Assembly: GCF_032444005.1 (NCBI RefSeq)
Contig: NC_091283.1
Location: 117,676,001 to 117,740,000 of the forward strand
DNA: 64,000 nt
Direction of reading: 5' to 3'
From: Ranitomeya imitator
Taxonomy: Eukaryota
Each line of letters begins with the position of its first letter. The first letter of the stretch is position 1. This document shows positions 12,233-49,173 of this stretch, piece after piece. Both the position numbers and the translations under genes were made by a program. Below the pieces are notes generated by a model. The model was not told the origin of the DNA, did not search any database, and worked only from the letters and a program-made list of their open reading frames with translations.

Positions 12233-12651
12233 GGGGTGTGGCTTGGCAATGGAACCAAATGGATGTGTGCACTAAAGCTCCTGCTGCTCCCAGGAATTCA
12301 AAGGCCATGGACAAGGCTAAATGCTGCAAAAAGAGCTCTAGGACATCAGATATTGAGTAGCAGCAAAGGAGAGGTGTTGAGGATGAGCAGCTGTGTATTT
12401 GCGGTGATGGGGAAGCTGTTTTATTTAGAGGAGAGAGAAGAGGGTCGTGTGTCTTCAAGCTTGCAGCAGAGCAAGATCCCTCCTGGTGAAACTGTCTTTT
12501 TGCATTCCCGTGCGGTTGGCAGGCATGTCAAAACGCCGCAAGCGGATGCATCTGCATACAATGCATGTCCCTGCATACCCAATGTTAAAGATAGGTATGC
12601 AGGATGATGCAGGATGCATGTGGATGTAGGCGGAGCATAGGTGGAGCTTAA

Positions 12652-15600
12652 CCCCTTCGCGACATGCACCGTACTAGTACTGCGCTGCCGGCACTGCATT
12701 AGTGCCAGCAGCAGTACTAGTATGGCGCACCGATCACCGCGGTCTCGCGCTGAGCGCCGCGGTGATCGGGTGCGGGTGTCAGCTGTATACGACAGCTGAC
12801 ACCCCGCAGCAATGCCCACGATCGGCGCTATCGCCGATCGCGGGCATTTAACCCCTCTGATGCCGCTGTCAGTAGTGACAGCGGCATAGAGGGGGATCGC
12901 GCAGGGACGGGGGCTCCCTGCGCTCTCTCACCGGAGCAACGCAATAAGATCGCGTTGCTCCGGTGACCTGGAAGGAGTCCCCGGATCCAAGATGGCCGCC
13001 GGACTCCTTCAGGGTTATGAAGTGACCTGGCTAGCCGGCGCCTGCTGAGAGCAGGCGCTGGAGAGCCAGCTAAGCTGCCTGTCAGATCGTTGATCTGACA
13101 GTGTGCTATGCACAGTGTCAGATCAACGATCTGATCTAATACAGAGATGTCCCACCCTGGGACAATGTTAGAAAGTAAAAAAAAAAAAAAAATAGAATGT
13201 GTAAAAAAAAAATAAAAAAAAATCCCCAAATAAAAAAAAAAAACATTTCCCAATAAATCCATTTATTTATGGAAAAAAAAAAAAACAATAAATGTACACA
13301 TATTTGGTATCGCCGCGTCCGTAACGACCCGCTCTATAAAACTATCCCACTAGTTAACCCCTTCAGTGAACACCGCAAAAAAAAAAAAAAAAAAAAAAAC
13401 AAGGCAAAAACAACGCTTTATTATCATACAGGCGAACAAAAAGTGGAATAACACGCGATCAAAACGACGGATATAAATAACCATGGTACCGCTGAAAACA
13501 TCATCTTGTCCCGCAAAAACAAAAGCCACCATACAGCATCATCAGCAGAAAAATGAAAAAGTTATAGCTCTCAGAATAAAGCGATGCAAAAACAATTATT
13601 TGTTTATATAAAATAGTTTTTATTGTGTAAAAGCGCCAAAACATAAAAAAAATTACATAAATGAGGTATCGCTGTAATCGTACTGACCCGAAGAATAAAA
13701 CTGCTTTATCCATTTTACCACCCGTGGAACGGTATAAACACCCCCCTAAAAGAAATTCAGGAATTGCTGGTTTTTGTTCATTCCGCCTCCCAAAAATCGG
13801 AATAAAAAGCGATCAAAAAATGTCATCTGCCCGAAAATGTGACCAATAAAAACGTCAACTCGTCCCGCAAAAAACAAGACCTCATATGACTCTGTGGGCC
13901 AAAATATGGATAAATTATAGCTCTCAAAATGTGGTGATGCAAAAACAATTTTTTGCAATAAAAAGCGTCTTTTAGTGTGTGACAGCTGCCAATCATAAAA
14001 ATCCGCCAAAAAAATGCTATAAAAGTAAATCAAACCCCCCTTCATCACCCCCTTAGTTAGGGAAAAATAATAAAATGTAAAAAAATGTATTTATTTCCAT
14101 TTTNNNNNNNNNNNNNNNNNNNNNNNNNNNNNNNNNNNNNNNNNNNNNNNNNNNNNNNNNNNNNNNNNNNNNNNNNNNNNNNNNNNNNNNNNNNNNNNNN
14201 NNNNNNNNNNNNNNNNNNNNNNNNNNNNNNNNNNNNNNNNNNNGGGTTTCCACTGTTTAGGCACATCAGGGGCTCTCCAAACGCGACATGGCGTCCGATC
14301 TCAATTCCAGCCAATTCTGCATTGAAAAAGTAAAACAGGGCTCCTTCCCTTCCGAGTTCTCCTGTGTGCCCAAACAGTGGTTCCCCCCAACATATGGGGT
14401 ATCAGCGTTCTCAGGACAAGTTGGACAACAACTTTTGGGGTCCAATTTGTCCTGTTACCCTTGGGAAAATAAAAACATAGGGGATAAAATATCATTTTCG
14501 TGAAAAAAAAAATATTTTGTTATTTTCACGGCTCTGCGTTATAAACTGTAGTGAAACACTTGTTGGTTCAAAGCTCTCACAACACATCTAGATAAGTTCC
14601 TTGGGGGGTCTAGTTTCCAATATGGGGTCACTTGTGGGGGGTTTCTACTGTTTAGGTACATCAGGGGCTCTGCAAATGCAACATGACGCCTGCAGACCAA
14701 TCCATCTAAGTCTGCATTTCAAATGGCGCTCATTCCCTTCCGAGCTCTGCCGTGCACCCAAACAGTGGTTCCCCCCAACATATGGGGTATCAGCGTTCTC
14801 AGGACAAGTTGGACAACAACTTTTGGGGTCCAATTTGTCCTGTTACCCTTGGGAAAATAAAAACATAGGGGATAAAATATCATTTTCGTGGAAAAAAAAA
14901 TATTTTTTATTTTCACGGCTCTGCGTTTTAAACTGTAGTGAAACACTTGTTGGTTCAAAGCTCTCACAACACATCTAGATAAGTTCCTTGGGGGGGTCTA
15001 GTTTCCACTATGGGGTCACTTGTGGTGGGTTTCTACTGTTTAGGTACATCAGGGGCTCTGCAAATGCAACATGACACCTGCAGTCCATTCCATCTAAGTC
15101 TGCATTTCAAACGGTGCTCCTTCCCTTCCGAGCTCTGCCATGCACTCAAACGGTGGTTCCCCCCCACATGTGGGGTATCAGCGTACTCAGGACAAATTGG
15201 ACAATAACATTTGTGGTCCAATTTCTCCTGTTACCCTTGGGGAAAAAAAATTGCGGGCTAAAACATCATTTTGTGGAAAGAAAAAATGATTTTTTAATTT
15301 TCACAATGCTACATTCTAAACTTTAGTGAAACAATTGGGGGTTAAAAGTGCTCACCACACATCTAGATAAGTTCCTTAGGGGGTCTTCTTTCCAAAATGG
15401 GGTCACTTGTGGGGGGTTTCCACTGTTAAGGCACGTCAGGGGCTCTCCAAATGCGACATGGCGTCCGATCTCAATTCCAGCCAATTTTGCATTGAAAAGT
15501 CAAATGGCACTCCTTCCCTTCCGAGCTCTGCCATGCGCTCAAACAGTGGTTTATCCCCATATATGAAGTATCGACGTACTCAGGACAAATTGCACAACAA

Positions 15601-16687
15601 CTTTTGGGGTCCAATTTATCCTTTTACCCTTGGGAAAATAAAAAATTTGGGGCAAAAAGATCATTTTTTGTGAAAATTAATAAAAAAAATTTTTTTACGG
15701 CTCTACATTATAAACTTCTGTGAAGCACTTGGAGGTTCAAAGTGCTCACCACACATCTAGATTAGTTCCTTAGGGGGTCTACTTTCCAAAATGGTGTCAC
15801 TTGTGGGGGTTTCCACTGTTTAGGCACATCAGGGGCTCTCCAATCGTGACATGGGCTCCGATCTCAATTCCAGCAAATCTTGCATTGAAAAGTCAAATGG
15901 CGCTCCTTCCCTTCCGAGCTCTGCCATGTGCCCAAACAGTGGTTTACCCCCACATATGGGGTATCGGCGTACTCAGGACAAATTGTACAACGACTTTTGT
16001 GGTCCAATTTCTCCTGTTACCCTTGGTAAAATGAAACAAATTGGACCTGAAGTAAAAATTTTGTGAAAAAAAAGTTAAATGTTCAATTTTTTTAAACATT
16101 CAAAAAATTCCTGTGAAGCACCTGAAGGGTTAATAAACTTTTTGAATGTGGTTTTGAGTACCTTGAGGGGTGCAGTTTTTAGAATGGTGTCACTTTTGGG
16201 CATTTTCTGTCATATAGACCCCTCAAAGTCACTTCAAGTGTGAGGTGGTCCGTAAAAAAATGGTTTTGAAAATTTTGTTGCAAAAATGAGAAATCGCTGG
16301 TCAACTTTTAACCCTTATAATGTCCTAACAAAAAAAAATTATGTTTCCAAAATTGTGCTGATGTAAAGCAGACATGTGGGAAATGTTGTTTATTAACTAT
16401 ATTATGTGATATAACTCTCTAATTTAAGGGCATAAAAACTAAGAGTTTGAAAATTGCTAAATTTTCATAATTTCCGACAAATTTTTGTTTTTTTCACAAA
16501 TAAATGCAAGTCATATCGAAGAAGTTTTACCACTATCATGAAGCACAATATGTCACGAGAAAACAGTGTCAGAATCACCAGGATCCGTTGAAGCGTTTCA
16601 GAGTTATGACCTCATAAAGTGACAGTGGTCAGAATTGTAAAAATTGGCCCTGTCACTTAGGTGAAAACAGGCTTTGGGGTGAAGGGG
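12652..16687. mobile_element. Non-autonomous piggyBac-type element, copy 1
   Basis: TTAA|CCCCTTC...GAAGGGG|TTAA (TTAA at 12648-51 and 16688-91). No transposase; five ~390-bp internal repeats; assembly gap at 14104-14243. Confidence 0.88.
14104..14243. other. Assembly gap (140 N)
   Basis: N run; the flanks match the borders of the telomere-like tract in copies 2 and 3. Confidence 1.
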
Positions 16688-17491
16688 TTAATGGAGGATG
16701 TACAAAGCCATACGCAGACCAGCTAAATGCAAGTGTGACACAGCCTATCTTTGTCCTTTCATCCTTGTCCATCCACCCAGACTAAGATGAAATTGGTAAT
16801 ATCAGGCATGTCATCAATTAGCTTCTCTAAATGTTAGAGGGTTTAATGTCCCACAAAAACATTCTCAAATTCTTTACGGGATGCATAAAATGGGAGTGCA
16901 AATTATTTTCTTACAGGAGACCTAGTTTTAAAGTAATCACTTACCAGAAGTGAAACATCGGTACTACACAGCCTGGCATCATGGGTTGAATCCGATTGCT
17001 GAATCTAAAGGGGTCAGCATTGCTATTCACAAAAATGTTACCTTTACCCTAGTAGAGTTTGAAACTGATGATAACAGACGTTTTATGGTAGTGAAGATTT
17101 CTTTTTTTAATCAGATCTACACACTAGCTAACTTTTATCTTCCAAACAAAGAGCAGGTGAGGACTGGGATGATATATTTGCGGCGACTGGAGTTTTTTTT
17201 GGAAGGCCTTTAGATTTTGGGGGAGACCTCAACCTGACGATGGATAAGATGTGGGACTCCTCAGTGGGTGAGTCTACTATTCCCCTTATGCAATTGTCCT
17301 CCTGGAAAAACAATCTCTTCAAATTGCTGGCAGTGGATGTGTGGTGTCTCTTATTTCCTAAAGATAGATATTACACCCACTACTCATCACTTCACAACTC
17401 ATATAGTAGAATCGACTACTTTTTGGTTAGTCTTCATTTGCTTAGCTGGGGTCCCCCGCTTCGAGGCGCACTATGAGCTGGCCAGACTATG

Positions 17492-25763: not shown

Positions 25764-27471
25764 GCTAGTTTATAAAAAAAAATCTCAAAGTTGAGAACTG
25801 ACTATTATTTCCAGTCTAATGTCATACCTAAAAAAACATTATTGTTTCTCTTCCCCTAGGCTACAACTGAAACCTAAAGATTAATTGATGATTTATTGAG
25901 TTTTAGTGCTAATTCATGCTCACACCATAAGCATCATGACATAAGATAGTTTACTTCTGCCTTATTCACTATGGTTTCCTATATTCCAATCTTGCATGAT
26001 TGGATTCAAGTTCTGGTAATTATTTTGTGGGTCTATAATATTTACTGTTTAACAGGCTCCTTAACCCCTTTCTGCCATTGGACGTAATATTCCGTCCATG
26101 TGGGGTGGGCCTTAATTCCCAAGGACGGAATATTACGTCCAGCGCGATCGGCCGCGCTCACGGGGGGAGCGCGGCCGATCGCGGCCGGGTGTCAGCTGCT
26201 TATCGCAGCTGACATCCGGCACTATGTGCCAGGAGCGGTCACGGACCGCCCCCAACACATTAACCCCCGGCAAAGATGATCGCGATGTGCCGGCGGTGCA
26301 GGGAAGCATCGCGCAGGGAGGGGGATCCCTGCGTGCTTCCCTGAGACCCCCGCATCAACGCGATGTGATCGCATTGCTCCGGGGGTCTCCTACCTCCCTC
26401 CCTGCAGTAAGTCCCGGATCCAAGATGGCCGCGGATCCGGGTCCTACAGGGAGGGAGGTGCCTTACCAAGTGCCTGCTCAGAGCAGGCACTTGGTAACGC
26501 TGCACTGCTCTCAGACAGATCGGTGATCTGTCAGAGTGCTGTGCAAACTGGCAGATCACCGATCTGTATTGTCCCCCCCTGGGACAAAGTAAAAAAGTAA
26601 AAAAAAAAATTTCCAAGTGTGTAAAAAAAAAAAAATCCTAAATAATGAAAAAAAAAAAATATTCCCATAAATACATTTCTTTATCTAAATAATAAAAAAA
26701 AACAATAAAAGTACACATATTTAGTATCGCCGCGTCCGTAACGACCCGACCTATAAAACTGGCCCACTAGTTAACCCCTTCAGTAAACACCGTAAGAAAA
26801 AAAAAAAAACGAGGCAAAAAACAACGCTATATTATCATACCGCCAAACAAAAAGTGGAATAACACGCGATCAAAAAGACGGATATAAATAGCCATGGTAC
26901 CACTGAAAGCGTCATCTTGTCCCGCAAAAAATGAGCCGCCATACAGCAACATCAGTAAAAAAATTAAAAAGTTATAGTCCTCAGAATAAAGCGATGCAAA
27001 AATAATTATTTTTTTCTATAAAATAGTTTTTATCGTATAAAAGCGCCAAAACATAAAAAAATGATATAAATGAGGTGTCGCTGTAATCATACTGAACCGA
27101 AAAATAAAACTGCTTTATCAATTTTACCAAACGCGGAACGGTATAAACGCCTCCCCCAAAAGAAATTCATGAATAGCTGGTTTTTGGTCATTCTGCCTCA
27201 CAAAAATCGGAATAAAAAGCGATCAAAAATGTCACGTGCCCGAAAATGTTACCAATAAAAACGTCAACTCGTCCCGCAAAAAACAAGACCTCACATGACT
27301 CTGTGGACTCAAATATGGAAAAATTATAGCTCTCAAAATGTGGTAACGCAAAAAATATTTTTTGCAATAAAAAGCGTCTTTCAGTGTGTGACGGCTGCCA
27401 ATCATAAAAATCCGCTAAAAAAACCCGCTATAAAAGTAAATGAAAAAAATGTATTTATTTCCATTTTCCCA

Positions 27472-27910
27472 TTAGGGTTAGGGCTAGGGTTAGGGCTAGG
27501 GTTAGGGCTAGGGCTAGGGTTAGGGCTAGGGCTAGGGTTAGGGCTAGGGTTAGGGCTAGGGCTAGGGTTAGGGCTAGTGTTAGGGCTAGGGTTAGGGCTA
27601 GAGNNNNNNNNNNNNNNNNNNNNNNNNNNNNNNNNNNNNNNNNNNNNNNNNNNNNNNNNNNNNNNNNNNNNNNNNNNNNNNNNNNNNNNNNNNNNNNNNN
27701 NNNNNNNNNNNNNNNNNNNNNNNNNNNNNNNNNNNNNNNNNNNNNNNNNNNNNNNNNNNNNNNNNNNNNNNNNNNGGTTGGGGCTAAAGTTAGGGTTAGG
27801 GTTTGGATTACATTTACGGTTGGGAATAGGGTTGGGATTAGGGTTAGGGGTGTGTCTGGGTTAGAGGTGTGGTTAGGGTTACCGTTGGGATTAGGGTTAG
27901 GGGTGTGTTT
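27472..27910 (+). repeat. Telomere-like TTAGGG/CTAGGG tract inside copy 2 (includes assembly gap 27604-27775)
   Basis: About 22 consecutive hexamers (TTAGGG/CTAGGG) at 27472-27603, then degenerate GGGTTAGGG/GGGTTGGG after the gap. Confidence 0.95.
27604..27775. other. Assembly gap (172 N)
   Basis: N run inside the telomere-like tract. Confidence 1.
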
Positions 27911-30362
27911 GGATTAGGGTTTCAGTTATAATTGGGGGGTTTCCACTGTTTAGGCACATCAGGGGGATCTCCAAACGCGACATGGCGACCGATCTCAATT
28001 CCATCCAATTCTGCATTGAAAAAGTAAAACAGTGCTCCTTCCCTTCCGAGCTCTCCCGTGTGCCCAAACAGGAGTTTACCCCAACATATGGGGTATCAGC
28101 GTACTCAGGACAAATTGGACAACAACTTTTGGGGTCCAATTTCTCCTGTTACCCTTGGGAAAATACAAAACTGGGGGCTAAAAAATAATTTTTGTGGGAA
28201 AAAGAGAGATTTTTTATTTTCACGGCTCTGCGTTATAAACTGTAGTGAAACACTTGGGGGCTCAAAGTTCTCACAACACATCTAGATAAGTTCGTGGGGG
28301 GTCTAGTTTCCAATATGGGGTCACTTGTGGGGGTTTCTACTGTTTAGGTATATTAGGGGCTCTGCAAACGCAATGTGACGCCTGCAGACCATTCCATCTA
28401 AGTCTGCATTCCAAATGGCGCTCCTTCCCTTCCGAGCCCTCCCATGCGCCCAAACGCTGGTTCCCCCCCCACATATGGGGTATCAACGCACTCAGGACAA
28501 ATTGGACAACAACTTTTGGGGTCCAATTTCTCCTTTTACCCTCGAGAAAATACAAAACTGGGGGCTAAAAAATAATTTTGAGGGGAATTTTTTATTTTTA
28601 TTTTCACGGCTTTGCGTTATAAACTGTAGTGAAATACTTGGGGGCTCAAAGTTCTCACAACACAACTAGATAAGTTCCTTGGGGGGTCTAGTTTCCAATA
28701 TGGGGTCACTTGTGGGGGGTTTCTACTGTTTAGGTACATTAGGGGCTCTGCAAACACAATGTGACGCCTGCAGACCATTCCATCTAAGTCTGTATTCCAA
28801 ATGGCGCTCCTTCCCTTCCGAACCCTCCCATGCGCCCAAACGCTGGTTCTCCCCCACATATAGGGTATCAGCGCACTCAGGACAAATTGCACAACAACTT
28901 TTGGGGTCCAATTTCTCCTGTTACCCTCAGGAAAATACAAAACTGGGGGCTAAAAAATTATTTTTGTGGGAAAAAATGTTTGTTTTATTTTTACGGCTCT
29001 GCATTATAAACTTCTGTGAAGCTCTTATTGGGTCAAAGTGCTCACCACACCTCTAGATAAGTTCCTTAGGGGGTCTACTTTCCAAAATGGTGTCACTTGT
29101 GGGGGGTTTCAATGTTTAGGCACATCAGTGGCTCTCCAAACGCAACATGGCGTCCCATCTCAATTCCTGTCAATTTTGCATTGAAAGGTCAAACGGCGCT
29201 CCTTCCCTTCCGAGCTCTCCCATGCGCCCAAACAATGGTTTACCCCCACATATGGGGTATCAGAGTACTCAGGACAAATTGTGCCACAACTTTTGTGGTC
29301 CAATTTCTTCTCTTACCATTGGGAAAATAAAAAATTGGGGGCGAAAAGATAATTTTTGTGAAAAAAAATGATTTTTTATTTTTACGGCTCTGCATTATAA
29401 ACTTCTGTGAAGCACTTGGTGGGTCAAAGTGCTCACCACACCTCTAGATAAGTTCCTTAGGGGGTCTACTTTCCAAAATGGTGTCACTTGTGGGGGTTTC
29501 AATGTTTAGGCACATCAGTGGCTCTCCAAACGCAACATGGCGTCCCATCTCAATTCCAGTCAATTTTGCATTGAAAAGTCAAATGGCGCTCCTTCCCTTC
29601 CGAGCTCTGCCATGCGCCCAAACTGTGGTTAACCCCCACATATGGGGTATCAGCGTACTCAGGACAAATCGTACAACAACGTTTGGGGTCAATTTTCTCC
29701 TTTAACCCTTGGTAAAATAAAACAAATTGGAGCTGAAGTAAATTTTTTGTGAAAAAAAGTTAAATGTTAATTTTTATTTAAACATTCCAAAAATTCCTGT
29801 GAAGCACCTGAAGGGTTAATAAACTTCTTGAATGTGGTTTTGAGAACCTTGAGGGGTGCAGTTTTTAGAATGGTGTCACACTTGGGTATTTTCTATCATA
29901 TAGACCCCTCAAAATGACTTCAAATGAGATGTGGTCCCTAAAATAAAATGGTGTTGTAAAAATGAGAAATTGCTGGTCAACTTTTAACCCTTATAACTCC
30001 CTAACAAAAAAAAATTTTGGTTCCAAAGTTGTGCTGATGTAAAGTAGACATGTGGGAAATGTTACTTATTGAGTATTTTGTGTGACATTTCTCTGTGATT
30101 TAATTGCATAAAAATTCAAAGTTGGAAAATTGCGAAATTTTCAAAATTTTCGCCAAATTTCCGTTTTTTTCACAAATAAACGCAGGTAATATCAAAGAAA
30201 TTTTACCACTATCATGAAGTACAATATGTCACGAGAAAACAATGTCACCGGGATCCGTTGAAGCGTTCCAGAGTTATAACCTCATAAAGGGACAGTGGTC
30301 AGAATTGTAAAAATTGGCCCGGTCCATAACGTGCAAACCACCCTTGGGGGTAAAGGGGTTAA

Positions 30363-30777
30363 AGGGAATCTGTCACCAGGTTTTTGCTACATCATCTGAG
30401 AGCAGTATAATATATTAAAAGAGCCTGTGATTCCAGTGATCTCTCACTTACTTTACTGGGTGCAGACGTTTTGGCACAATCAGAGTTTTTAGATGTAACA
30501 TACAGCAGAGCTCAGAGAGCTAACCCCACCAAGAGGACAGATTTCTGTGTACATTGTACATTGACAGTGAGCTGCTTACCAAAGGAGGGGGCATGGTCAT
30601 ACCAGAGCTCATTTACACTGGGATCCTGACAGTGATAATCTCTAGGTGATAAAATGTTAAATTTATGTAAACAACAGAACACAGCCTAATAAGTGACACA
30701 TCCCTTAAACCTGTGTCTCAGACCCTACCTCATGCTGTCCTTAGATTACATAGCCAAAACCCACTAACCGATTCTCT
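30363..30777. mobile_element. TTAA-flanked Kolobok/T2-type MITE
   Basis: TTAA|AGGGAATCTG...CCGATTCTCT|TTAA; shares its left TTAA with piggyBac-type copy 2; same family as 56407-57475. Confidence 0.75.
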
Positions 30778-33420: not shown

Positions 33421-35299
33421 GAATAAATATACAGTACAGGATGTATCACCCACTTTGTAAGAATGGATCCCACACTGGCAAAGACGAGCCATATTTAATA
33501 TAGACAGTTCATCTTGCCATGTAATACCACATTACTAATGCAGCGGGTACCATTGATTAAATGGTCATGGCATCTCTGGGAAAACTTTTATTTTCTTATG
33601 TTGCCTGGAAGCTCCTGAAATGGGCAGCCCGTGATGAAACAAACGCATTACGATGGAAGTATGATCATGTATGATTAATGGTGATGACCAATAAATTAAA
33701 GTTTCATTGTTTATTATCGATTTTTTTTTAGAACATTTATAATAGGCAATAATCGTTATCGTCTCTCAGAAATTAACGAAGCATAATGATTATGTGTTTG
33801 ATAAGCAGTTGGTTATGTGAGCAATGTTAATCAATTTAAATCAAATTAGGCTTTGTAATTACGGAATACGGTAAATATTAACACAGGCTGTCATGTGTGG
33901 AAAATATACCTTACCTTATAATAATAGGCTATAGATAACAACATTCATTGTGTGGAAAGTGAATGCCTGGCAGATTTTTTGACGAAGGTAAAATGGTGAA
34001 AGTACTTTCATTGTTTGGTAATCTACTAATACTGTAATTATTTATGAAGCATGTAACATATAAAGATTACCCGTTCGCTCTCTTAACATTTATACCTTAG
34101 TAAATAACTATCATCTCCATACAATAACAATGCTGGAACATCTTTTCGTAGATGTCACCATTGTGCCTTTCCTCTTGCATTCCTGGAAATTTATGAATAA
34201 TTTCACAACAAATATACAAGTGCTTGTCCTTGTTAATAACCATGAATTCATACCTGATGCCACTTTTATACTCAAAAAATCACATGCCTGAAGAAGCAAC
34301 AATTCTAAATCCAGTTGTGATCTGTATTCTATAGAATATTATTAAGAAGTTTCATAAGACCTTGTATTTTAGGTTTAGCTTTCTTAAATCTTAGTTAATC
34401 GAGGTCAAGTATTTGATTGCACCTGGGCTACACAAACACGCTGTCACATATTGGAAAGTGTTTGGCTTATGTCAGCATTGCTATTTACAGGATTTACACC
34501 TGAGACTTTTTTTTCATAGCAATAGAATTTGAGAGGACCCCAACAAATTTTCTGAAACTCTTTAAGACCATTCAGTTTGTTCAACCAGTTTTATGGTAAA
34601 ATACAGTTCTGGAAAAATTTGGGAGACCACTGCAAAATTTTTAGTTTGTCTGATTTTTCTCTTTATAGGTATATTTTTAAGTAAAATGTAAATTGCTCTT
34701 TTATTCTATAAACTAATGACAACATGTCTTCGAATTTCCAAACACTAAATTTTGCATTTATTTTCATAAAATGAGAAATGCCAAAATAACAAAAAAAAAA
34801 TGCAGTGCTTGGCAACCTCAAATAATGCTTTAATGTTTTAAATTAGGAAGAGTTCAGGATTCAATATTTTGTGGAATAACCATGATTTTTAATCACAGCT
34901 TTCATGCATCTTGGCATGCTTTCTACCAGTCTTTAAGCCCTTTCTGGCATTAGACGTACTATTCCATCCATGTGACCCAGGCCCTAATTCCCATAGACGG
35001 AATAGTATGTCTAACGCGATCAGCCGCGCTCACGGGGGGAGGGAGGCCGATCGCGGCTGGGTATAAGCTGACTATCACTATCACATTAACCCCCGGAACA
35101 CTGCGATCAAACATGATCGCAGTGTTACAGCGGCATAGGGAAGCATCGCGCAGGGAGGGGGCTCCTTGTGTGCTTCCCTGAGACCCACTGAGCAATGCGA
35201 TGTCTCCTCTGTCCTCCTCCCTGCAGGCCCTGGATCCAAGATGGCCGCAGGGCTCCTTCCGGGTCCTGCAGGGAGGTGGCTTGCAAGCGCCTGCTCAGA

Positions 35300-36047
35300 T
35301 GTTATGGCTGGCAATCAGGCAACACAGCGTGCAGTAATCAGCGCACATACAGAGATCTGGCAATAACCCAAAACAATAGGACGAGCTCTGAGACGTGGAA
35401 TCTCTGTAGACTGCAGTACCTGATCTATCCTCACACAACTGGAAGCAGCAGTGGATTGCGCCTATCAACTACCTATGCAACTCGGCACTGCCTGAGGAGC
35501 TGACATGCCTGAAGATAGAAATACAAGCCTGACTTACCTCAGAGAAATACCCCAAAGGAATAGGCAGCCCCCACATATAATGACTGTTAGCAAGATGAAA
35601 AGACAAACGTAGGAATGAAATAGATTCAGCAAAGTGAGGCCCGATATTCTAGACAGAGCGAGGATAGCAAAGAGAACTATGCAGTCTACAAAAAACCCTA
35701 AAACGAAAACCACGCAAAGGGGCAAAAAGACCCACCGTGCCGAACTAACAGCACGGCGGTGCACCCCTTTGCTTCTCAGAGCTTCCAGCAAAAGATAATA
35801 ACAAGCTGGACAGAAAAAACAGAAAACAAACTAGAAGTACTTATCTAGCAGAGCAGCAGGCCCAAGGAAAGATGCAGTAGCTCAGATCCAACACTGGAAC
35901 ATTGACAAGGAGCAAGGAAGACAGACTCAGGTGGAGCTAAATAGCAAGGCAGCCAACGAGCTCACCAAAACACCTGAGGGAGGAAGCCCAGAGACTGCAA
36001 TACCACTTGTGACCACAGAAGTGAACTCAGCCACAGAATTCACAACA
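35300..36047 (-). repeat. 3' LTR of the Gypsy element
   Basis: Direct repeat of 40240-40987. Confidence 0.97.
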
Positions 36048-39000
36048 GTACCTCCCCCTTGAGGAGGGGTCACCGAACCCTCACCAGAACCCCCAGGCCG
36101 ACCAGGATGAGCCACATGAAAGGCACGAACAAGATCTGGGGCATGGACATCAGAGGCAAAAACCCAGGAATTATCTTCCTGAGCATAACCCTTCCATTTG
36201 ACCAGATACTGGAGTTTCCGTCTAGAGACACGAGAATCCAAAATCTTCTCCACAACATACTCCAATTCCCCCTCCACCAAAACAGGGGCAGGAGGCTCCA
36301 CAGATGGAACCATAGGTGCCACGTATCTCCTCAACAACGACCTATGGAATACATTATGTATGGAAAAGGAGTCTGGGAGGGTCAGACGAAAAGACACCGG
36401 ATTGAGAATCTCAGAAATCCTATACGGACCAATAAAACGAGGTTTAAATTTAGGAGAGGAAACCTTCATAGGTATATGACGAGAAGATAACAAAACCAGA
36501 TCCCCAACACGAAGTCGGGGTCCCACACGGCGTCTGCGATTAGCGAAAAGCTGAGCCTTCTCCTGGGACAAGGTCAAATTGTCCACTACCTGAGTCCAGA
36601 TCTGCTGCAACCTGTCCACCACATAATCCACACCAGGACAGTCCGAAGACTCAACCTGTCCTGAAGAGAAACGAGGATGGAACCCAGAATTGCAGAAAAA
36701 TGGAGAGACCAAGGTAGCCGAGCTGGCCCGATTATTAAGGGCGAACTCAGCCAACGGCAAAAATGACACCCAATCATCCTGGTCAGCGGAAACAAAACAT
36801 CTCAGATATGTTTCCAAGGTCTGATTGGTTCGTTCGGTCTGGCCATTAGTCTGAGGATGGAAGGCCGAGGAAAAAGATAGGTCAATGCCCATCCTACCAC
36901 AAAAGGCTCGCCAGAACCTCGAGACAAACTGGGAACCTCTGTCAGAAACAATATTCTCAGGAATGCCATGTAAACGAACCACATGCTGGAAGAACAAAGG
37001 CACCAAATCAGAGGAGGAAGGCAATTTAACCAAGGGCACCAGATGGACCATTTTAGAAAAGCGATCACAGACCACCCAAATGACAGACATCTTTTGAGAA
37101 ACGGGAAGGTCAGAAATGAAATCCATCGAAATATGTGTCCAAGGCCTCTTCGGGACCGGCAAGGGCAAAAGCAACCCACTGGCACGTGAACAGCAGGGCT
37201 TAGCCCTAGCACAAATTCCACAGGACTGCACAAAAGCACGCACATCCCGTGACAGAGATGGCCACCAGAAGGATCTAGCAACCAACTCCCTGGTACCAAA
37301 GATTCCTGGATGACCGGCCAGCACTGAACAATGAAGTTCAGAGATAACTTTACTAGTCCACCTATCAGGGACGAACAGTTTCTCGGCCGGACAACGATCA
37401 GGTTTATTAGCCTGAAATTTCTGCAACACTCTCCGCAAATCAGGGGAGATGGCAGACACAATGACTCCTTCCTTGAGGATACTCGCCGGCTCAGATAACC
37501 CCGGAGAGTCGGGCACAAAACTCCTAGACAGAGCATCCGCCTTCACATTTTTAGAGCCCGGAAGGTATGAAATCACAAAATCAAAACGAGCAAAAAATAA
37601 CGACCAACGGGCCTGTCTAGGATTCAAGCGCTTGGCAGACTCAAGATAAGTAAGGTTCTTATGATCAGTCAAAACCACCACGCGATGCTTAGCACCCTCA
37701 AGCCAATGACGCCACTCCTCGAATGCCCACTTCATGGCCAGCAACTCTCGGTTGCCCACATCATAATTACGCTCAGCAGCAGAAAATTTCCTGGAAAAGA
37801 AAGCACATGGTTTGAACACTGAGCAACCAGAACCTCTCTGTGACAAAACCGCCCCTGCACCAATCTCAGAAGCATCAACCTCGACCTGGAACGGAAGAGA
37901 AACATCAGGTTGACACAACACAGGGGCAGAACAAAAACGACGCTTCAACTCCTGAAAAGCTTCCACGGCAGCAGAAGACCAATTAACCAAATCAGCACCC
38001 TTCTTGGTCAAATCGGTCAATGGTCTGGCAATGCTAGAAAAATTACAGATGAAGCGACGATAAAAATTAGCAAAGCCCAGGAATTTCTGCAAACTTTTTA
38101 GAGATGTCGGCTGAGTCCAATCCTGGATGGCCTGAACCTTAACCGGATCCATCTCGATAGTAGAAGGGGAAAAGATGAACCCCAAAAATGAAACTTTCTG
38201 CACACCGAAGAGACACTTTGATCCCTTCACGAACAAGGAATTAGCACGCAGTACCTGGAAAACCATTCTGACTTGCTTCACATGAGACCCCCAATCATCT
38301 GAGAAGATCAAAATGTCATCCAAGTAAACAATCAAGAATTTATCCAGATACTCACGGAAAATGTCATGCATAAAAGACTGAAAAACAGATGGAGCATTGG
38401 CAAGTCCGAACGGCATCACCAGATACTCAAAATGACCCTCGGGCGTATTAAATGCCGTTTTCCATTCATCTCCCTGCCTGATTCTCACCAGATTATACGC
38501 ACCACGAAGATCAATCTTAGTAAACCAACTAGCCCCCTTAATCCGAGCAAACAAGTCAGAAATCAATGGCAAGGGATACTGAAACTTAACAGTGATCTTA
38601 TTAAGAAGGCGGTAATCAATACACGGTCTTAGCGAACCATCCTTCTTGGCTACAAAAAAGAACCCTGCTCCCAATGGTGACGACGATGGGCGAATATGTC
38701 CCTTCTCCAGGGACTCCTTCACATAACTGCGCATAGCGGTGTGTTCAGGTACGGACAAATTAAATAAACGACCCTTAGGGAATTTACTACCAGGAATCAA
38801 ATCGATAGCACAATCACAATTCCTATGCGGAGGAAGGGCATCAGACTTGGACTCTTCAAATACATCCTGAAAGTCCGACAAGAACTCTGGGATGTCAGAA
38901 GGAATGGATGATGAAATAGACAAAAATGGAACATCACCATGTACTCCCTGACAACCCCAGCTGGTTACCGACATAGAGTTCCAATCCAATACTGGATTAT

Positions 39001-40108
39001 GGGTTTGTAGCCATGGCAACCCCAACACGACCACATCATGCAAATTATGCAGTACCAAAAAGCGAATAACTTCCTGATGTGCAGGAGCCATGCACATGGT
39101 CAGCTGGGCCCAGTACTGAGGCTTATTCTTGGCCAGAGGTGTAGCATCAATTCCTCTCAACGGAATAGGACACCACAAAGGCTCCAAGAAAAATCCACAA
39201 CGTTTAGCATAATCCAAATCCATCAGATTCAGGGCAGCGCCTGAATCCACAAACGCCATGACAGAATATGATGACAAAGAGCACATTAAGGTAATGGACA
39301 AAAGGAATTTGGACTGTGCAGTACCAATAACGGCAGAGCTATCGAACCGCCTAGTGCGTTTAGGACAATTAGAAATAGCATGAGTAGAATCACCACAATA
39401 GAAACACAGTCTGTTCAGACGTCTGTGTTCGTGCCGTTCTACTTTAGTCATAGTCCTGTCGCACTGCATAGGCTCAGGCTTACTCTCAGACAATACCGCC
39501 AGATGGTGCACAGATTTACGCTCGCGCAAGCGACGACCGATCTGAATGGCCAAGGACATAGACTCATTCAAACCAGCAGGCATAGGAAATCCCACCATTA
39601 CATCCTTAAGAGCTTCAGAGAGACCCTTTCTGAACAAAGCCGCTAGTGCAGATTCATTCCACAGAGTGAGTACTGACCATTTTCTAAATTTCTGACAATA
39701 TACTTCTACATCATCCTGACCCTGGCATAAAGCCAGCAGATTTTTCTCAGCTTGATCCACTGAATTAGGCTCATCGTAAAGCAATCCCAGCGCCTGGAAA
39801 AATGCATCAACATTACTCAATGCAGAATCTCCTGGTGCAAGAGAAAACGCCCAGTCCTGTGGGTCGCCGCGCAAAAAAGAAATAATAATCAAAACCTGTT
39901 GAATAGGATTACCAGAAGAATGAGGTTTCAAGGCCAAAAATAGCTTACAATTATTTCTGAAGCTCAGGAACTTAGTTCTGTCACCAAAAAACAAATCAGG
40001 AATCGGAATTCTTGGTTCTAGCATCGATTTCTGATCAATAGTATCTTGAATCTTTTGTACATTTACAACGAGATTATCCATTGAGGAGCACAGAGCCTGA
40101 ATATCCAT
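35927..40108 (-). CDS. Single-ORF Gag-Pol polyprotein (~1393 aa from MDIQAL; open from 40408)
   Basis: Gag with CFYCGDSTHAISNC knuckle; protease FVDSGA; RT YLDDILIFS; RNase H VDASEIG; integrase HHCC region plus MDFISDLP/VSDRGSQF/QTERTNQTLE; GPY motif; chromodomain YVVEKILDSR...QYLVKWKGY..EDNSW. Confidence 0.96.
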   Translation of the reverse strand: MDIQALCSSMDNLVVNVQKIQDTIDQKSMLEPRIPIPDLFFGDRTKFLSFRNNCKLFLALKPHSSGNPIQQVLIIISFLRGDPQDWAFSLAPGDSALSNVDAFFQALGLLYDEPNSVDQAEKNLLALCQGQDDVEVYCQKFRKWSVLTLWNESALAALFRKGLSEALKDVMVGFPMPAGLNESMSLAIQIGRRLRERKSVHHLAVLSESKPEPMQCDRTMTKVERHEHRRLNRLCFYCGDSTHAISNCPKRTRRFDSSAVIGTAQSKFLLSITLMCSLSSYSVMAFVDSGAALNLMDLDYAKRCGFFLEPLWCPIPLRGIDATPLAKNKPQYWAQLTMCMAPAHQEVIRFLVLHNLHDVVVLGLPWLQTHNPVLDWNSMSVTSWGCQGVHGDVPFLSISSSIPSDIPEFLSDFQDVFEESKSDALPPHRNCDCAIDLIPGSKFPKGRLFNLSVPEHTAMRSYVKESLEKGHIRPSSSPLGAGFFFVAKKDGSLRPCIDYRLLNKITVKFQYPLPLISDLFARIKGASWFTKIDLRGAYNLVRIRQGDEWKTAFNTPEGHFEYLVMPFGLANAPSVFQSFMHDIFREYLDKFLIVYLDDILIFSDDWGSHVKQVRMVFQVLRANSLFVKGSKCLFGVQKVSFLGFIFSPSTIEMDPVKVQAIQDWTQPTSLKSLQKFLGFANFYRRFICNFSSIARPLTDLTKKGADLVNWSSAAVEAFQELKRRFCSAPVLCQPDVSLPFQVEVDASEIGAGAVLSQRGSGCSVFKPCAFFSRKFSAAERNYDVGNRELLAMKWAFEEWRHWLEGAKHRVVVLTDHKNLTYLESAKRLNPRQARWSLFFARFDFVISYLPGSKNVKADALSRSFVPDSPGLSEPASILKEGVIVSAISPDLRRVLQKFQANKPDRCPAEKLFVPDRWTSKVISELHCSVLAGHPGIFGTRELVARSFWWPSLSRDVRAFVQSCGICARAKPCCSRASGLLLPLPVPKRPWTHISMDFISDLPVSQKMSVIWVVCDRFSKMVHLVPLVKLPSSSDLVPLFFQHVVRLHGIPENIVSDRGSQFVSRFWRAFCGRMGIDLSFSSAFHPQTNGQTERTNQTLETYLRCFVSADQDDWVSFLPLAEFALNNRASSATLVSPFFCNSGFHPRFSSGQVESSDCPGVDYVVDRLQQIWTQVVDNLTLSQEKAQLFANRRRRVGPRLRVGDLVLLSSRHIPMKVSSPKFKPRFIGPYRISEILNPVSFRLTLPDSFSIHNVFHRSLLRRYVAPMVPSVEPPAPVLVEGELEYVVEKILDSRVSRRKLQYLVKWKGYAQEDNSWVFASDVHAPDLVRAFHVAHPGRPGGSGEGSVTPPQGGGTVVNSVAEFTSVVTSGIAVSGLPPSGVLVSSLAALLFSST

Positions 40109-40239
40109 GTCCACAGCTGTGTCCTGAAGCACTCTAATGTCTAGGGGAAAAAAAAGACTGAAGACAGAGCTAAGAAAAAAAAATGATGTCAGGATTTCTT
40201 TTTTCCCTCTATTGGAAATCATTGAAAGGCTCCTTGTAC

Positions 40240-40987
40240 TGTTATGGCTGGCAATCAGGCAACACAGCGTGCAGTAATCAGCGCACATACAGAGATCTGG
40301 CAATAACCCAAAACAATAGGACGAGCTCTGAGACGTGGAATCTCTGTAGACTGCAGTACCTGATCTATCCTCACACAACTGGAAGCAGCAGTGGATTGCG
40401 CCTATCAACTACCTATGCAACTCGGCACTGCCTGAGGAGCTGACTAGCCTGAAGATAGAAATACAAGCCTGACTTACCTCAGAGAAATACCCCAAAGGAA
40501 TAGGCAGCCCCCACATATAATGACTGTTAGCAAGATGAAAAGACAAACGTAGGAATGAAATAGATTCAGCAAAGTGAGGCCCGATATTCTAGACAGAGCG
40601 AGGATAGCAAAGAGAACTATGCAGTCTACAAAAAACCCTAAAACGAAAACCACGCAAAGGGGCAAAAAGACCCACCGTGCCGAACTAACAGCACGGCGGT
40701 GCACCCCTTTGCTTCTCAGAGCTTCCAGCAAAAGATAATAACAAGCTGGACAGAAAAAACAGAAAACAAACTAGAAGCACTTATCTAGCAGAGCAGCAGG
40801 CCCAAGGAAAGATGCAGTAGCTCAGATCCAACACTGGAACATTGACAAGGAGCAAGGAAGACAGACTCAGGTGGAGCTAAATAGCAAGGCAGCCAACGAG
40901 CTCACCAAAACACCTGAGGGAGGAAGCCCAGAGACTGCAATACCACTTGTGACCACAGAAGTGAACTCAGCCACAGAATTCACAACA
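40240..40987 (-). repeat. 5' LTR of the Gypsy element, with TATA-like TATTTAG at 40883-40877
   Basis: Direct repeat of 35300-36047. The motif GCTATTTAGCTCC is also present in the other Gypsy LTR at 24052-24064. Confidence 0.95.
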
Positions 40988-42008
40988 CTCAGAGCAGGCA
41001 CCAGCAAGCCTACTGCAGTGCCTGTCAGATTGCTGATCTGACACAGTGCATTGCAAAGTGTCAGATCAGCAATCTGACACTCTAGCATGATGTACCACAC
41101 TGGGACAAAGTAAAAAAGTAAAAAAAATATATATTTACATACGTGTAAAAAAAAAATCCTAAATAAATAAAAAAAAATTGTTCCAATAAATACATTTCTT
41201 TATGTAAATAATAAAAAAACAATAAAAGTACACATATTTAGTATTGCTGCGTCTGTAACGACTCGACCTATAAAACTGTCCCACTAGTTAACCCCTTCAG
41301 TGAACACCATAAAAAAAACTTGGCAAAAAACAATGCTTTATCATCATACCGCCGAACAAAAAGTGGAATAACATGCGATCAAAAAGACGGATATAAATAA
41401 ACATTGTACCGCCGAAAACATCATCTTGACCCGCAAAAAATAAGGCACCATACAGCGTCATCAGCAAAAAAATAAAAAGTTATAGCCCTCAGAATAAAGC
41501 GATGCAAAAATAATTATTTTTTCTATAAAATAGTTTTTATTGTGTAAAAGCGCCAAAACATAAAAAAAGATATAAATGAGGTATCGCTGTAAACGTACTG
41601 ACCTGAAGAATAAAACTGCTTTATCAATTTTACCAAACGCGGAATGGTATAGACGCCCCCCAAAGAAATTCACAAATTGTTGGTTTTTCTTCATTTTGCC
41701 TATCAAAAATCAGAATAGAAAGCCATCAAAAAATGTCATGTGCCCGAAAATGATACCAATAAAAATGTCAACTCATCCCGCAAAAAACATGACCTCGCAT
41801 CACTTTGTGGACCAAAATATGGAAAAATTATAGCTCTCAGAATGTGGTAACGCAAAAAATATTTTTTGCAATATAAAGCGTCTTTTAGTGTGTGACAGCT
41901 GCCAAACATAAAAACCCACTATAAATAGTAAATCAAACCCCCCATTATTACCACCTTAGTTAGGGAAAAATAATAAAATAAAAAAGTGTATTTATTTCTA
42001 TTTTCCCA

Positions 42009-42452
42009 TTAGAGTTAGGGTTGTGGCTAAAGTTAGGGTTGGAGCTAAAGTTAGGGTTAGGGTTGGGGCTAAAGTTAGGGTGGGGCTAAAGTTAGGGTTA
42101 TTGTTGGGGCTAAAGTTAAGGTTGGGGTTAAGTTAGGGTTAGGGTTGAGGCTAAAGTTAGGGTTGGGGCTAAAGTTAGGGTTGGGGCTAGAGTTGGGGTT
42201 AGGGTTTGGATTACGTTTACATTTGGGTTAGGGGTGTGTCAGGATTAAAGGTATGGTTAGGATTGGAATTAGGGTTAGGGGTGTGTTGTGGTTGGGATTA
42301 GGTTTAGGGGTGTGTTCTGGTTAGTGGTGTGGTTAGGGTTGGGATTAAGGTAAGGGGTGTGTTGGGGCTAGGGGTGAGTTAGGGTTAGGGGTGTGGTTCA
42401 GGTTGGGATTAGGCTTAGGGGTGTTTTGGGGTTAGGATTGGAGTTAGAATTA
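42009..42452 (+). repeat. Telomere-like G-rich tract in copy 3 (18-bp unit TTAGGGTTGGGGCTAAAG, then degenerate)
   Basis: Repeated GTTAGGGTTGGGGCTAAA and GGGTTAGGG; same position in the element as the tract in copy 2. Confidence 0.9.
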
Positions 42453-43014
42453 GGTGTTTAGGCACACCAGGAGCTCTGCAAACGCAACATGACGTCCAAT
42501 CTCAATCCATACAATTCTGTATTGAAAAAGTAAAACGGTGCTCCTTCCCTTCCGAGCTCTGCCGTGCGCCCAAACAGTGGTTTACCCCCACATATGGGGT
42601 ATCAGCTTACTCAGAATAAATTGTACAATAACTTTTGCAGTCCAATTTCTTCTGTTACCTATGGAAAAATACAAAACTGGGGGCTAAAAAATCAATTTTG
42701 TGGAAAAAAAAGATTTTTTATTTTCACGGCTCTGCGTTATAAACTTTAGTGAAACACTTGGGGGTTCAAGTTCCTTGGGTGGTCTAGTTTTCAAAATGGG
42801 GTCACTTGTGGGCGGTTTCTACTGTTTAGGTACATCAGGCACCCTGCAAACACAACATGATGCCCGCAGACCATTCTATTAAAGTCTGCATTCCAAAACA
42901 CCACCTCCCTTCTGAGCTCTGCTGTGCACCCAAACAGTAGTTTTCACCCACATATGGGGTATCAGCATACTCAGGACAAATTAAATAACTTTTGCGGTCC
43001 AATTTCACCTGTAA

Positions 43015-45520: not shown

Positions 45521-46627
45521 TGTATTGGGTTTCCTTCACTGTATATTTCAAGCTACGGTTTTCTCTTTCAATATATTTTTCTGCATCATGGTATAGTTAA
45601 AACATTGTTAAAAAATACTACATTGGTGCACAGAAACATATGGACACTCTGAGTTTCCTAAAAGAGTTTGTTCTGCCCCAAATAAAAAAATGAGTAAAAA
45701 TACATGAACATCAAAGATGAACAAAATATACTGACAACAAGCAGAGTTCGAAATACTGTAAAAAAAAAAACAGTGATGCGTAATAACAAGAAATTCAGTA
45801 ATAACAATTAAATATTAGGTAATGAAGGTTAGCCAAGTAACCAAAAAAGTAACATACTAGAACTCCATCCTGCTTGCTATAACTGTATCTTGTTGTCCTT
45901 TACTGTTCAGGTTTCTTTTGTATTTTTGTTTCTTTTTATATTCTTATTTGAGTGGAAGTGTATTTCTTGTTGTTTCTATTACACCAGTGTGCTTTCTAAC
46001 CATTTTTTTACTATGAGTATGATGAAATAAAGATTATTAATTTAAATTAATTAATTACAAACGTTCTCAAAAAAAGTAATTAGAATTGATTCATCAGGTT
46101 CAAGATTTGCAAATTTGCAGGGAATTAAGATGTTGTGCCTTTAAACATGGAGGTAATGCGTGATCAGATGCAATTCAATGTTTAAGCAATCATTTTCCTT
46201 GTTCTTATTGGAATGTGAATATTGTAGTTTCAAACTGAATGCAGCAAAGCCATGTTGGAACAAATATTGTAAATGAGTAAAGAAGAATGTATGAAACAAA
46301 CCTGAATATGTTTTAAAACTTAAATTATTTAAAGTAACGCACTTTTCCTCTGATGACAGCTTTACACATCCTTGGCATTCATTAAGCGGCCACCTGGAGT
46401 GGTTTTCGATGAACATGTATGCCTTGTGAAAAGTTCATGTGTGTCAGAAAGTGTTTGCAGCCATGAGGAATGTTTTGCAGAGGCATTGTTGGTTGGTTAT
46501 GCAGGTCACTACAATGATGAACTTTATCCCACAATGGTTTTAAGCCAGAATATTGCAAGAACTATTCAACTAAGTAAAAAAAGGGACAGTCCATCGATAC
46601 TTTAAGATCTGATGCTAGAACTTTTAA

Positions 46628-49173
46628 CCCCTTTCTACCATTGGACGTACTATTTGGTCCATGTGGGGTGGGCCCTACTTCCCAAGGAAGAAATAGTACG
46701 TCCAGCGCGATCAGCTGCGCTCACGGGGGAAGCACGACCGATCGCGGCTGGGTGTCAGCTGACTATCGCAGCTGACATCCGGCACTATGTGCCAGGAGCG
46801 GTCATGGACCACCCCAGCACAATAACCCCGCCACACTGCGATCAAACATGATCGCAGTGTTCCAGCGGTGCAGGGAAGCATCGCGCAGGGAGAGGGCTCC
46901 CTGCTTGCTTCCCTGAGACTTGGGTCTCTTACCACCTCCTCCCTGCAGCCCTGGATCCAAAATGGCCATGGGGCTGCATCCGGGTCCTACAGGGAGGTGG
47001 CTTACCAGCGCCTGCTCAGAGCAGGCGCTGGGAAGCCTCCCTGCTGTGCATGTCAGATCGCTGATCTGACACAATGCACAGCAACTTGTCAGATCAGTGA
47101 TCTGTCACTTTACTGTGATGTCCCCCCTGGGGCAAAGTAAAAAAGTTTAAAAAAAAACATATTTACATGTGTAAAAAAAAAAATCCTAAACAAATAATAA
47201 AAAAAATATTGTTCCAAACTTTCCAACGATCACGACCAGCGATACGACCTGGCTGTGATCGTTGGAAAGTCCTTGTGTGGTCGCTGGGGAGCTGTCTCAC
47301 AGACAGCTCTCCAGTGACCAACGATGCCGAAGTCCCCGGGTAACCAGGGTAAACATCGGGTTACCATTGTAAAAGTAAAAAAAAACAAAAACACTACATA
47401 CTCACATTCCGGTGTCTGTCACGTCCCTCGCCGTCAGCTTCCTGCACTGACTCTGTGAGCACCGGCCGTAAAGCATAGCACAGCGGTGACGTGTGCTTTA
47501 CGGCCGGCGCTCACAGTCAGTGCGGGAAGCTGACGGCGAGGGACGTGACAGGGGCCCTCCAAACGCGACATGGCATCCGATCTCAATTCCAGCCAATTCT
47601 GCGTTAAAAAAGTAAAACAGTGCTCCTTCCCTTCCGAGCTCTCCCGTGCATCCAAACAGGGGTTTACCCCAACATGTGGGGTATAAGCGTACTCAGGACA
47701 AATTGGACAACAACTTTTGGCTTCCAATTTCTCCTGTTACCCTTGGAAAAATACAAAACTGGGGGCTAAAAAATAATTTTTGCGAAAAAAAAAGATTTTT
47801 TATTTTCATCGCTCTGCGTTATAAACTGTAGTGAAACACTTGGGGGTTCAAAGTTCTCACAACACATCTAGATAAGTTTCTTGGGGGTCTAGTTTCCAAT
47901 ATGGGGTCACTTGTGGGGGGTTTCTACTGTTTAGTCACATCAGGGGCCCTGCAAATGCAACGTGACGCCTGCAGACCAATCCATCTAAGTCTGCAATTCA
48001 AATGGCGCTCCTTCCCTTCCGAGCTCTGCCATGCACCCAAACGGTGGTTCCCCCCACATATTGGGTATCAGCGTAGTCAGGACAAATTGGACCACAACTT
48101 TTGGGGTCCAATTTCTTCTCTTACCCTTGGGAAAAGAAAAAATTGGGGGCGAAAAGATCATTTTTGTGAAAAAATATGATTTTTTATTTTTACGGCTCTG
48201 CATTTTAAACTTCTCTGAATCACTTAATGGGTCAAAGTGCTCACCACACATCTAGATAAGTTCCTTATGGGGTCTACTTTCCAAAATGGTGTCATTTGTG
48301 GGGTGTTTCACTGTTTAGGCACATTAGGGGCTCTCCAAACGCAACATGGCGTCCCATCTCAATTCCAGTCAATTTTGCATTGAAAAGTCAAATGGCGCTC
48401 CTTCGCTTCTGAGCTCTTCCTTGCGCCCAAACAGTGGTTTACCCCACATATGGGGTATCGGCGTACTCAGGATAAATTGCACAATAACTTTTGGGGTCCA
48501 TTTTCTCCTGTTACCCTTGATAAAAGAAAACAAATTGCAGCTGAAGTAAATTTTTTGTGAAAAAAAGTTAAATGTTCATTTATATTTAAATATTCCAAAA
48601 ATTCCTGTGAAACACCTGAAGGGTTAATAAACCTCTTGAATGTGGTTTTGAGCACCTTTAGGGGTGCAGTTCATAGAATGGTGTCACACTTGGTTATTTT
48701 CTATCATATAGACCCCTCAGAATGACTTCAAATGAGATATGGTCCGTAATAAAATGGTGTTGTAAAAATGAGAAATTGCTGGTCAACTTTTAACCCTTAT
48801 ACAGTAACTCCCTAACAAAAAAAAATTTGGTTCCAAAATTGTGCTGATGTAAAGTAGACATGTGGAAAATGTTACTTGTTAAGTATTTTGTGTGACATAT
48901 CTCTGTGATTTAATTGCATAAAAATTCAAAGTTGGAAAATTGCTAAATTTTCAACATTTTTGCCAAATTTCAGTTGTTTTCACAAATAAATGCAGGTAAT
49001 ATCAAAGAAATTTTCCCACTAACATGAAGGACAATATGTCATGAGAAAACAGTGTCAGAATCACCAGGATCCGTTGAAGCATTCCAGAGTTATAACCTCA
49101 TAAAAGGACAGTGGTCAGAATTGTAAAAATTGGCCCGGTCATTAACATGCAAACCACCCTTGGGGTAAAGGGG
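46628..49173. mobile_element. Non-autonomous piggyBac-type element, copy 4 (internal segment replaced by a foreign filler)
   Basis: TTAA|CCCCTTT...AAAGGGG|TTAA; colinear with copy 2 except 47218-47550; three ~380-bp repeats. Confidence 0.88.

Follow-up and report, generated by a model that had tools for sequence, protein, structure and literature searches.

A telomere-like tract built of TTAGGG-type units lies at one fixed internal position in a family of piggyBac-like non-autonomous elements, and we regard it as probably a neutral hitchhiking minisatellite of the telomeric type that was inherited within the family and remodelled after insertion. TTAGGG is the telomere repeat of vertebrates; it is bound by TRF1 and TRF2 and forms G-quadruplexes. 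The tract can be read in letters in two copies of the element only (copies 2 and 3), copy 1 consisting of Ns at that position. Below, "the window" denotes the whole 64-kb stretch of DNA that was analyzed.

Copies and ends of the element family

By self-comparison and end alignment, we found in the 64-kb window (GC 42%) four copies of one non-coding element of 2.5-4.3 kb, all on the same strand. Copy 1 (12648-16691, + strand) is complete and reads TTAA, CCCCTTCGCG at its left end and GAAGGGG, TTAA at its right end. Copy 2 (26061-30362, +), also complete, measures 4298 bp between its TTAAs and is bounded by TTAA, CCCCTTTCTGCC on the left and GTAAAGGGG, TTAA on the right. Copy 3 is present in two parts separated by a nested chromovirus: a 5' part (34933-35299, +; TTAA, GCCCTTTCTGG and left arm), and a remainder (40988-43014, +) that holds the end of the left arm, the A-rich arm, the tract and about 1.5 units of a 388-bp tandem array. 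Despite its apparent truncation, this copy is intact on the 5' side, where its first 367 bp correspond to 34933-35299, and it is truncated at the 3' side near 43014. Copy 4 (46624-49177, +) has complete ends with TTAA on both sides and an internal loss, and its 388-bp array has only 2.5 units.

Copies 1, 2 and 4 have a TTAA target-site duplication at each end, and TTAA also bounds copy 3 on the left; every complete copy begins with CCCCTT(T/C) and has the complement of this sequence at its right end. Compared in the same two ways, the flanks of the copies are mutually unrelated, which indicates that the four copies are separate insertions and do not go back to a segmental duplication. No empty site of the element was found in the window.

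The left arm of copy 1 differs from the others in its first ~430 bp (12648-13080), which represent a diverged subtype with respect to 26061-26515. This part was not detected by BLAST against copies 2 and 4, the remaining element being 86-90% alike, and subfamilies may have exchanged left arms or gained them more than once.

The chromovirus within copy 3 (35300-40987) has LTRs of ~748 bp that are 99% alike over the 300 nt compared, and is young; gag, protease, RT, RNase H, integrase and chromo domains are encoded in its ORF of 1493 aa. The insert has CTCAGA to its left and right, and the corresponding site is uninterrupted in copy 2, so the insertion point is exact. Copy 3 is thus old enough to have received a nested chromovirus, yet it has retained a 450-bp tract.

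Superfamily of the carrier

The family has a TTAA duplication and CCC...GGG termini in common with the piggyBac superfamily, including TxpB (Uribo/Kobuta) of Xenopus and an autonomous piggyBac copy at 51152-53670, and its left end may resemble the TxpB end motif. Its left and right ends, each well conserved between copies, have only 7-8 nt in common; this inverted repeat is short for the superfamily, in which piggyBac-type elements are expected to carry terminal inverted repeats of roughly 12-19 nt, accompanied or not by subterminal repeats, and is unlike the 17-nt ends that the autonomous copy in the window has. Kolobok and T2-MITE elements target TTAA too, but their termini are AGGRR (PMC6004289), and this identity was rejected on account of the CCCC/GGGG ends of the present family.

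The element contains no ORF that reaches 200 aa. Homologues were searched for a 57-aa ORF beside the tract and a 125-aa ORF in the array, with none found for either, and an ORF at 27295-27864 that runs through Ns was dismissed as an artefact of the repeat, the element being non-coding and the reading frame irrelevant. Classification of the carrier as a piggyBac-type non-autonomous element is supported by its target site and terminal trinucleotides, and a piggyBac-type enzyme would have mobilised it. An earlier note on this DNA had named the same kind of carrier, in agreement with the TTAA plus CCC...GGG signature and the missing coding capacity.

The autonomous piggyBac at 51152-53670 is apparently intact. 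TTAA flanks it at either end, its inverted repeats of 17 nt (CCCTCCGTCACATACAA) are perfect, and a minus-strand ORF of 614 aa (51488-53332) matches PF13843 (E=1.9e-78) and, over residues 93-597, the T. ni piggyBac transposase structure 6x67 (E=1.5e-97); the copy may have been recently active. The occurrence of an intact canonical piggyBac in the window means that the superfamily is present in the genome. This copy was considered as the partner of the family and rejected: the CCCTCCGTCACATACAA ends are unlike those of the family, so that this copy is no evident partner. It is the sole autonomous piggyBac in the window, and no transposase with matching ends was found there.

Internal organization

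The element consists almost entirely of tandem-repeat modules. Read on copy 2, they follow one another in the order left arm, A-rich arm, anchor, telomere-like tract, 388-bp array and right arm. The left arm (~700 bp) is GC-rich and contains many short palindromes; the right arm measures ~600 bp. The A-rich arm (26771-27465, +) starts at an internal second TTAA-CCCCTTCAGT end at 26771, which is also found at 13354 and 41288, and is made of two old units of ~353 bp that are 65% alike. We also considered whether this arm repeats the 388-bp array in inverted orientation and rejected the idea, since only the internal ~353 bp duplication was detected. Because of the internal second end, the structure suggests a composite origin, in which an older element, reaching from the internal TTAA to the right end, would have been combined with a left-arm fragment; the outer ends carry TTAA flanks in copies 2 and 4.

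In copy 2, the tandem array (27933-29758, +) comprises 4.7 units of 386-388 bp that are ~85% alike, and the element in general is built with 4.6-4.7 units of the 388-bp repeat. When copies 1 and 2 are compared, identity is 87% over 2460 nt in register and 80-83% out of register. The best match being in register, the array is older than the insertion of these two copies.

Structure and position of the telomere-like tract

The conserved anchor AAAAARTGTATTTATTTCYATTTT, which ends in ...TATTTATTTCCATTTT, occurs three times in the window (14080, 27444 and 41981), compared with 0 occurrences expected by chance. In copies 2 and 3, the anchor is followed by CCCATTAG(G/A)GTTAGGG, and the alignment reveals a proximal junction that is identical to the base, as fits the observation in the earlier note that the tract occupies the same internal position.

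The tract of copy 2 (27466-27932, +) consists of a proximal block (27466-27603), an N run (27604-27775) and a distal degenerate block (27776-27932), so the assembled span, which includes the N run, is not a true tract length. We counted 23 hexamers in the proximal block, where about 22 had been reported before; 10 are exact TTAGGG, 10 are CTAGGG and 2 are near variants, with a G3 run every 6 nt. TTAGGG and CTAGGG alternate almost perfectly, giving TRF periods of 12, 18 and 30 at 85-94% matches, and higher-order units of 18 and 30 nt are present. The distal block is degenerate, with 8 exact and 4 one-mismatch units.

The tract of copy 3 (42006-42455, +) is gap-free and 450 bp long. It contains an 18/41-nt block, a short unique spacer and a 29/47-nt block of the GGTTAGGGGTGTG type, and its 19 exact and 20 one-mismatch units cover 52% of its length. 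It had been described as ~440 bp of TTAGGG-containing 18-mers; the TTAGGG-like nature of the tract stands, whereas 18-mers occur only at ~42013-42204, as part of the 18/41-nt units, and beyond the spacer the periods are 29, 47 and 76 nt. Both tracts have the features of an interstitial telomeric sequence (ITS), that is, tandem units of the TTAGGG type (138 nt in copy 2, 450 nt in copy 3) at a non-terminal site.

The distal half of the tract, including the unique spacer (TTTGGATTAC then TTTAC), is collinear between copies 2 and 3. Together with the identical proximal junction, this collinearity indicates that the tract was already present in the common ancestor of the two copies. The K2P distance between copies 2 and 3 is 0.36-0.375 in the two tract blocks and 0.10-0.14 in the arms and array, i.e. 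the tract has diverged about three times as much as its flanks; in line with these values and with the differing periods, the earlier claim of a fast-evolving tract with units that differ between copies is upheld. The same internal position in independently inserted copies, with variable unit and length, is the pattern of a hitchhiking repeat.

Unit differences between copies could also be read as a sign that the tract arises repeatedly, after insertion, at a fragile spot where telomerase healing or slippage acts on the boundary between A-rich arm and array. The site is indeed a boundary between two repeat modules, and a TTAGTTAGGG seed lies 45 nt upstream in copies 1 and 3. However, copies 2 and 3 have an identical junction (CCCATTAG then GTTAGGG), the same spacer (TTTGGATTAC then TTTAC) and the same block order, which independent origin would not reproduce, and we find repeated birth of the tract highly improbable.

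Another source that we weighed is the chromosome end itself: tract and 388-bp array may together be captured subtelomeric DNA or, conversely, subtelomeric satellites may derive from the element. Variant hexamers (CTAGGG, TTGGGG) beside a satellite-like array do resemble telomere-associated sequence, and in frogs, portions of transposable elements are reported to have given rise to subtelomeric arrays (PMC10794172). Still, on the G strand the order is purer repeats, degenerate repeats and then satellite, whereas a native chromosome end would have the satellite first; this reversed order speaks against a simple subtelomere capture. The window, moreover, is 130 Mb or more away from one end of its sequence piece. 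We therefore rate a subtelomeric connection as unlikely, in either direction.

Telomere-type motifs and G-quadruplex potential

YTAGGGTTR, a TRF-type half-site, occurs 25 times in the window, always on the + strand, and 24 of these sites fall inside the two tracts (12 per tract), compared with a chance level of ~0.8 per strand in shuffles. On this count the tracts are telomere-like rather than merely G-rich, as the earlier note had proposed.

Canonical G4 motifs number four in the proximal block of copy 2, one in its distal block and one in copy 3, with a mean G4Hunter score of 1.1-1.2, and a G4-aware in-silico fold predicts four consecutive stacked quadruplexes in the proximal block of copy 2. 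The predicted G4 potential is thus strong in this block and weak in copy 3.

These motifs raise the question of whether the tract is a functional module that, by attracting TRF-type Myb proteins (shelterin) or by folding into G4 structures, would tether, target, shield or silence-proof the transposon; the earlier note had suggested a use of shelterin or G4 for protection or targeting. The 12 YTAGGGTTR sites per tract remain on the same strand despite fast turnover, the proximal block of copy 2 combines its four predicted consecutive quadruplexes with four canonical motifs, and the tract has one and the same orientation within the element wherever it is seen. Inheritance alone, however, explains the constancy of the strand. 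Moreover, copy 4 is without the tract, yet it has complete ends and TTAA flanks (the loss may predate or postdate its insertion), and copy 3 retains only one canonical G4 motif in 450 bp of a sequence that is decaying (K2P ~0.37). We consider a functional module very unlikely. It is just as doubtful that the one-strand half-sites and G4 motifs form a maintained module that would bind telomere proteins and so steer chromatin state, nuclear position or insertion preference; in that event, a DNA transposon with very high copy number would be borrowing the telomere-recognition system of its host.

Around either tract, we found no Telomerase-vert match at E values up to 10, and an identity as TERC-ITS was rejected given the absence of a telomerase-RNA-like flank. 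A search for known RNA families in or beside the tract found none.

N runs and the copy without the tract

The window contains only two N runs (14104-14243 and 27604-27775), and both are at one position of the family. In copy 1, the anchor ends at 14103, the N run occupies 14104-14243 and the 388-bp array starts at 14244; the gap, bounded by the anchor and the first 388-bp unit, is exactly where the earlier note had placed it, at the position of the tract. In copy 2, both sides of the gap are within the tract, on the same strand, and collinear with successive parts of the copy 3 tract: 27466-27603 aligns with 42006 to ~42140, and the part from 27776 with that from 42179. The A-rich arm lies before these parts of the tract and the 388-bp array after them, which is the usual order. 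From these alignments, the join across the N run of copy 2 looks sound, with no sign of a misjoin.

Since both N runs touch the tract position, we considered that the tract might be an assembly artefact, produced by telomere-like reads misplaced at collapsed repeats or gap edges. This is hardly credible: the tract of copy 3 has no gap and passes without a break into unique flanks at either end, and all copy 3 bins are covered by contigs of four independent studies. The coincidence of the N runs at one position fits a repeat that is hard to assemble or was deliberately masked, but it does not prove a tract in copy 1. Because both N runs of the window fall in the position of the block, the family may account for many assembly gaps or masked stretches.

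In copy 4, an unrelated and partly palindromic stretch of 334 bp (47215-47548) takes the place of the A-rich arm and the tract; this accords with the earlier report that this copy has lost the region. The filler includes a long near-perfect palindrome (~47400-47545) and could represent a fragment of a foldback element or MITE, or else have been produced by repair.

Abundance beyond the window

In five organism labels, from five studies, 29-47% of the sampled words of 41300-42900 were present. We also placed short contigs (160-580 nt) of four public runs, representing four organism labels, on 1.6 kb of copy 3 at 80% likeness. Each run contributed 90,891-201,785 contigs to these 1.6 kb, and 30 of 30 bins were covered, including those of the tract; such coverage measures abundance and not the linkage of tract and element, as telomere-like contigs may come from other sites. 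In the four runs, the joints listed correspond to the 388-bp register and to length variants within the tract; none of those listed skips the tract, and none of the loose ends listed is at the proximal junction. Taken together, the word and contig counts show that the family is very abundant and occurs in several organism labels. Metagenome contigs and viral contigs were scanned for exact matches to the anchor and to the beginning of the 388-bp unit, and none was present.

These counts bear on the central proposal of the earlier note, that a transposon spreads interstitial telomere-like sequence through the genome. A contribution of this kind is plausible because the carrier is of the piggyBac type and the tract is an inherited internal module, and beyond the window the family itself is very abundant.

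Proposed history of the tract

We come back to the neutral hitchhiking minisatellite as the probable explanation. The telomere-like block, seen in two copies, would have been present in the master copy of the family, and cut-and-paste transposition, as suggested by the structure of the element, would carry it to each new TTAA site. After insertion, replication slippage and unequal exchange would then generate the copy-specific units of 18, 29, 30, 41 and 47 nt, with the block staying G-rich on one strand while its units change. Assuming neutrality, the block would persist as a passenger, and a side effect would be the scattering of interstitial telomere-like sites that are G4-prone and rich in TRF motifs.

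As to its origin, the block most likely goes back to an ancestral copy that received a short insertion of telomeric repeats or in which a TTAGGG microsatellite was born. The first could have taken place at a repaired break and the second near the TTAGTTAGGG seed 45 nt upstream; a break-repair origin finds no support in the flanks, neither tract having a TERC-like sequence around it.

Relation to known systems

Non-autonomous DNA transposons with tandem repeats as passengers are well established, and many satellites derive from transposable elements (PMC6947457, PMC6004289). One example is Xstir, an internal tandem repeat riding on Xmix (T2-MITE) of Xenopus (Hikosaka and Kawahara 2000, 2004, as cited in PMC6004289 and PMC6947457). 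As summarized in these citing papers, Xmix/Xstir resembles the present case in that a frog non-autonomous, TTAA-targeting DNA transposon is accompanied by an internal tandem repeat of variable copy number. By the same accounts, Xmix belongs to Kolobok, with AGGRR ends, whereas the present family has CCCC...GGGG ends, and the Xstir unit is non-telomeric, whereas here three repeat modules are adjacent, one of them TTAGGG-like. A second example is provided by the (GTCY)n MITEs of insects, which carry hitchhiking microsatellites (Coates et al. 2011, as cited in PMC6947457). In that citing account, a short-unit repeat likewise has a fixed internal position in a non-autonomous DNA transposon and is dispersed by transposition, but host, superfamily and motif are different; in our case the motif is the telomere repeat of the host, with higher-order units up to 450 bp.

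Vertebrate ITS have been classified as short ITS at double-strand breaks, TERC-ITS and heterochromatic ITS (PMC9693754, PMC8537989, PMC7215372). They resemble the present tracts as internal TTAGGG-type arrays with degenerate variants, and the standard explanation for them, an origin through break repair or the birth of a microsatellite, could also hold for the first copy of the family. They are, however, single, locus-specific insertions, whereas here the array was multiplied within a mobile element and has no TERC-like flank. A systematic study of TERC-ITS found no role of transposons in their spread (PMC8537989), and reviews have proposed transposable elements as spreaders of interstitial telomeric sequence (PMC9693754, PMC6803351).

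In the full-text literature searched (most subscription journals and Repbase lie outside it), we found no piggyBac-like family described as having a telomeric minisatellite built in. The earlier note had known of no such description; this holds for a sequence-level case, but repeats riding on MITEs are known and the spread of ITS by transposable elements had already been proposed.

Interstitial telomeric FISH signals are frequent in anuran karyotypes, including in euchromatin (PMC9693754). If most copies of the family keep the block, it would constitute a concrete and countable source of such signals and of G4-prone, break-prone sites. The relevance of the family is mainly to anuran cytogenetics and assembly quality.

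Other repeats and mobile elements in the window

A TTAA-flanked element of 3.5 kb at 58726-62240 has the same CCCCTTT/AAAGGGG terminal heptamer as the family and an unrelated interior, with no ORF longer than 124 aa and without a telomere-like tract; several families in the genome thus have this end in common. Directly after the right TTAA of copy 2 (30359-30420) stands AGGGAATCTGTCACC, an AGGRR-type end as in Kolobok/T2 MITEs (AGGGAA), so that one TTAA is common to two TTAA-targeting elements of different superfamilies. The mix of repeats, this end among them, would fit an amphibian host.

Two more long-unit tandem arrays, unrelated to the family, are found at 5430-6598 (260-bp unit, 4.5 copies, 97% matches) and at 63290-63711 (232-bp unit, 1.8 copies). 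On the minus strand, 1909-5217 holds an ORF of 1102 aa with a BED zinc finger and a hAT C-terminal dimerisation domain, which is possibly an intact hAT transposase.
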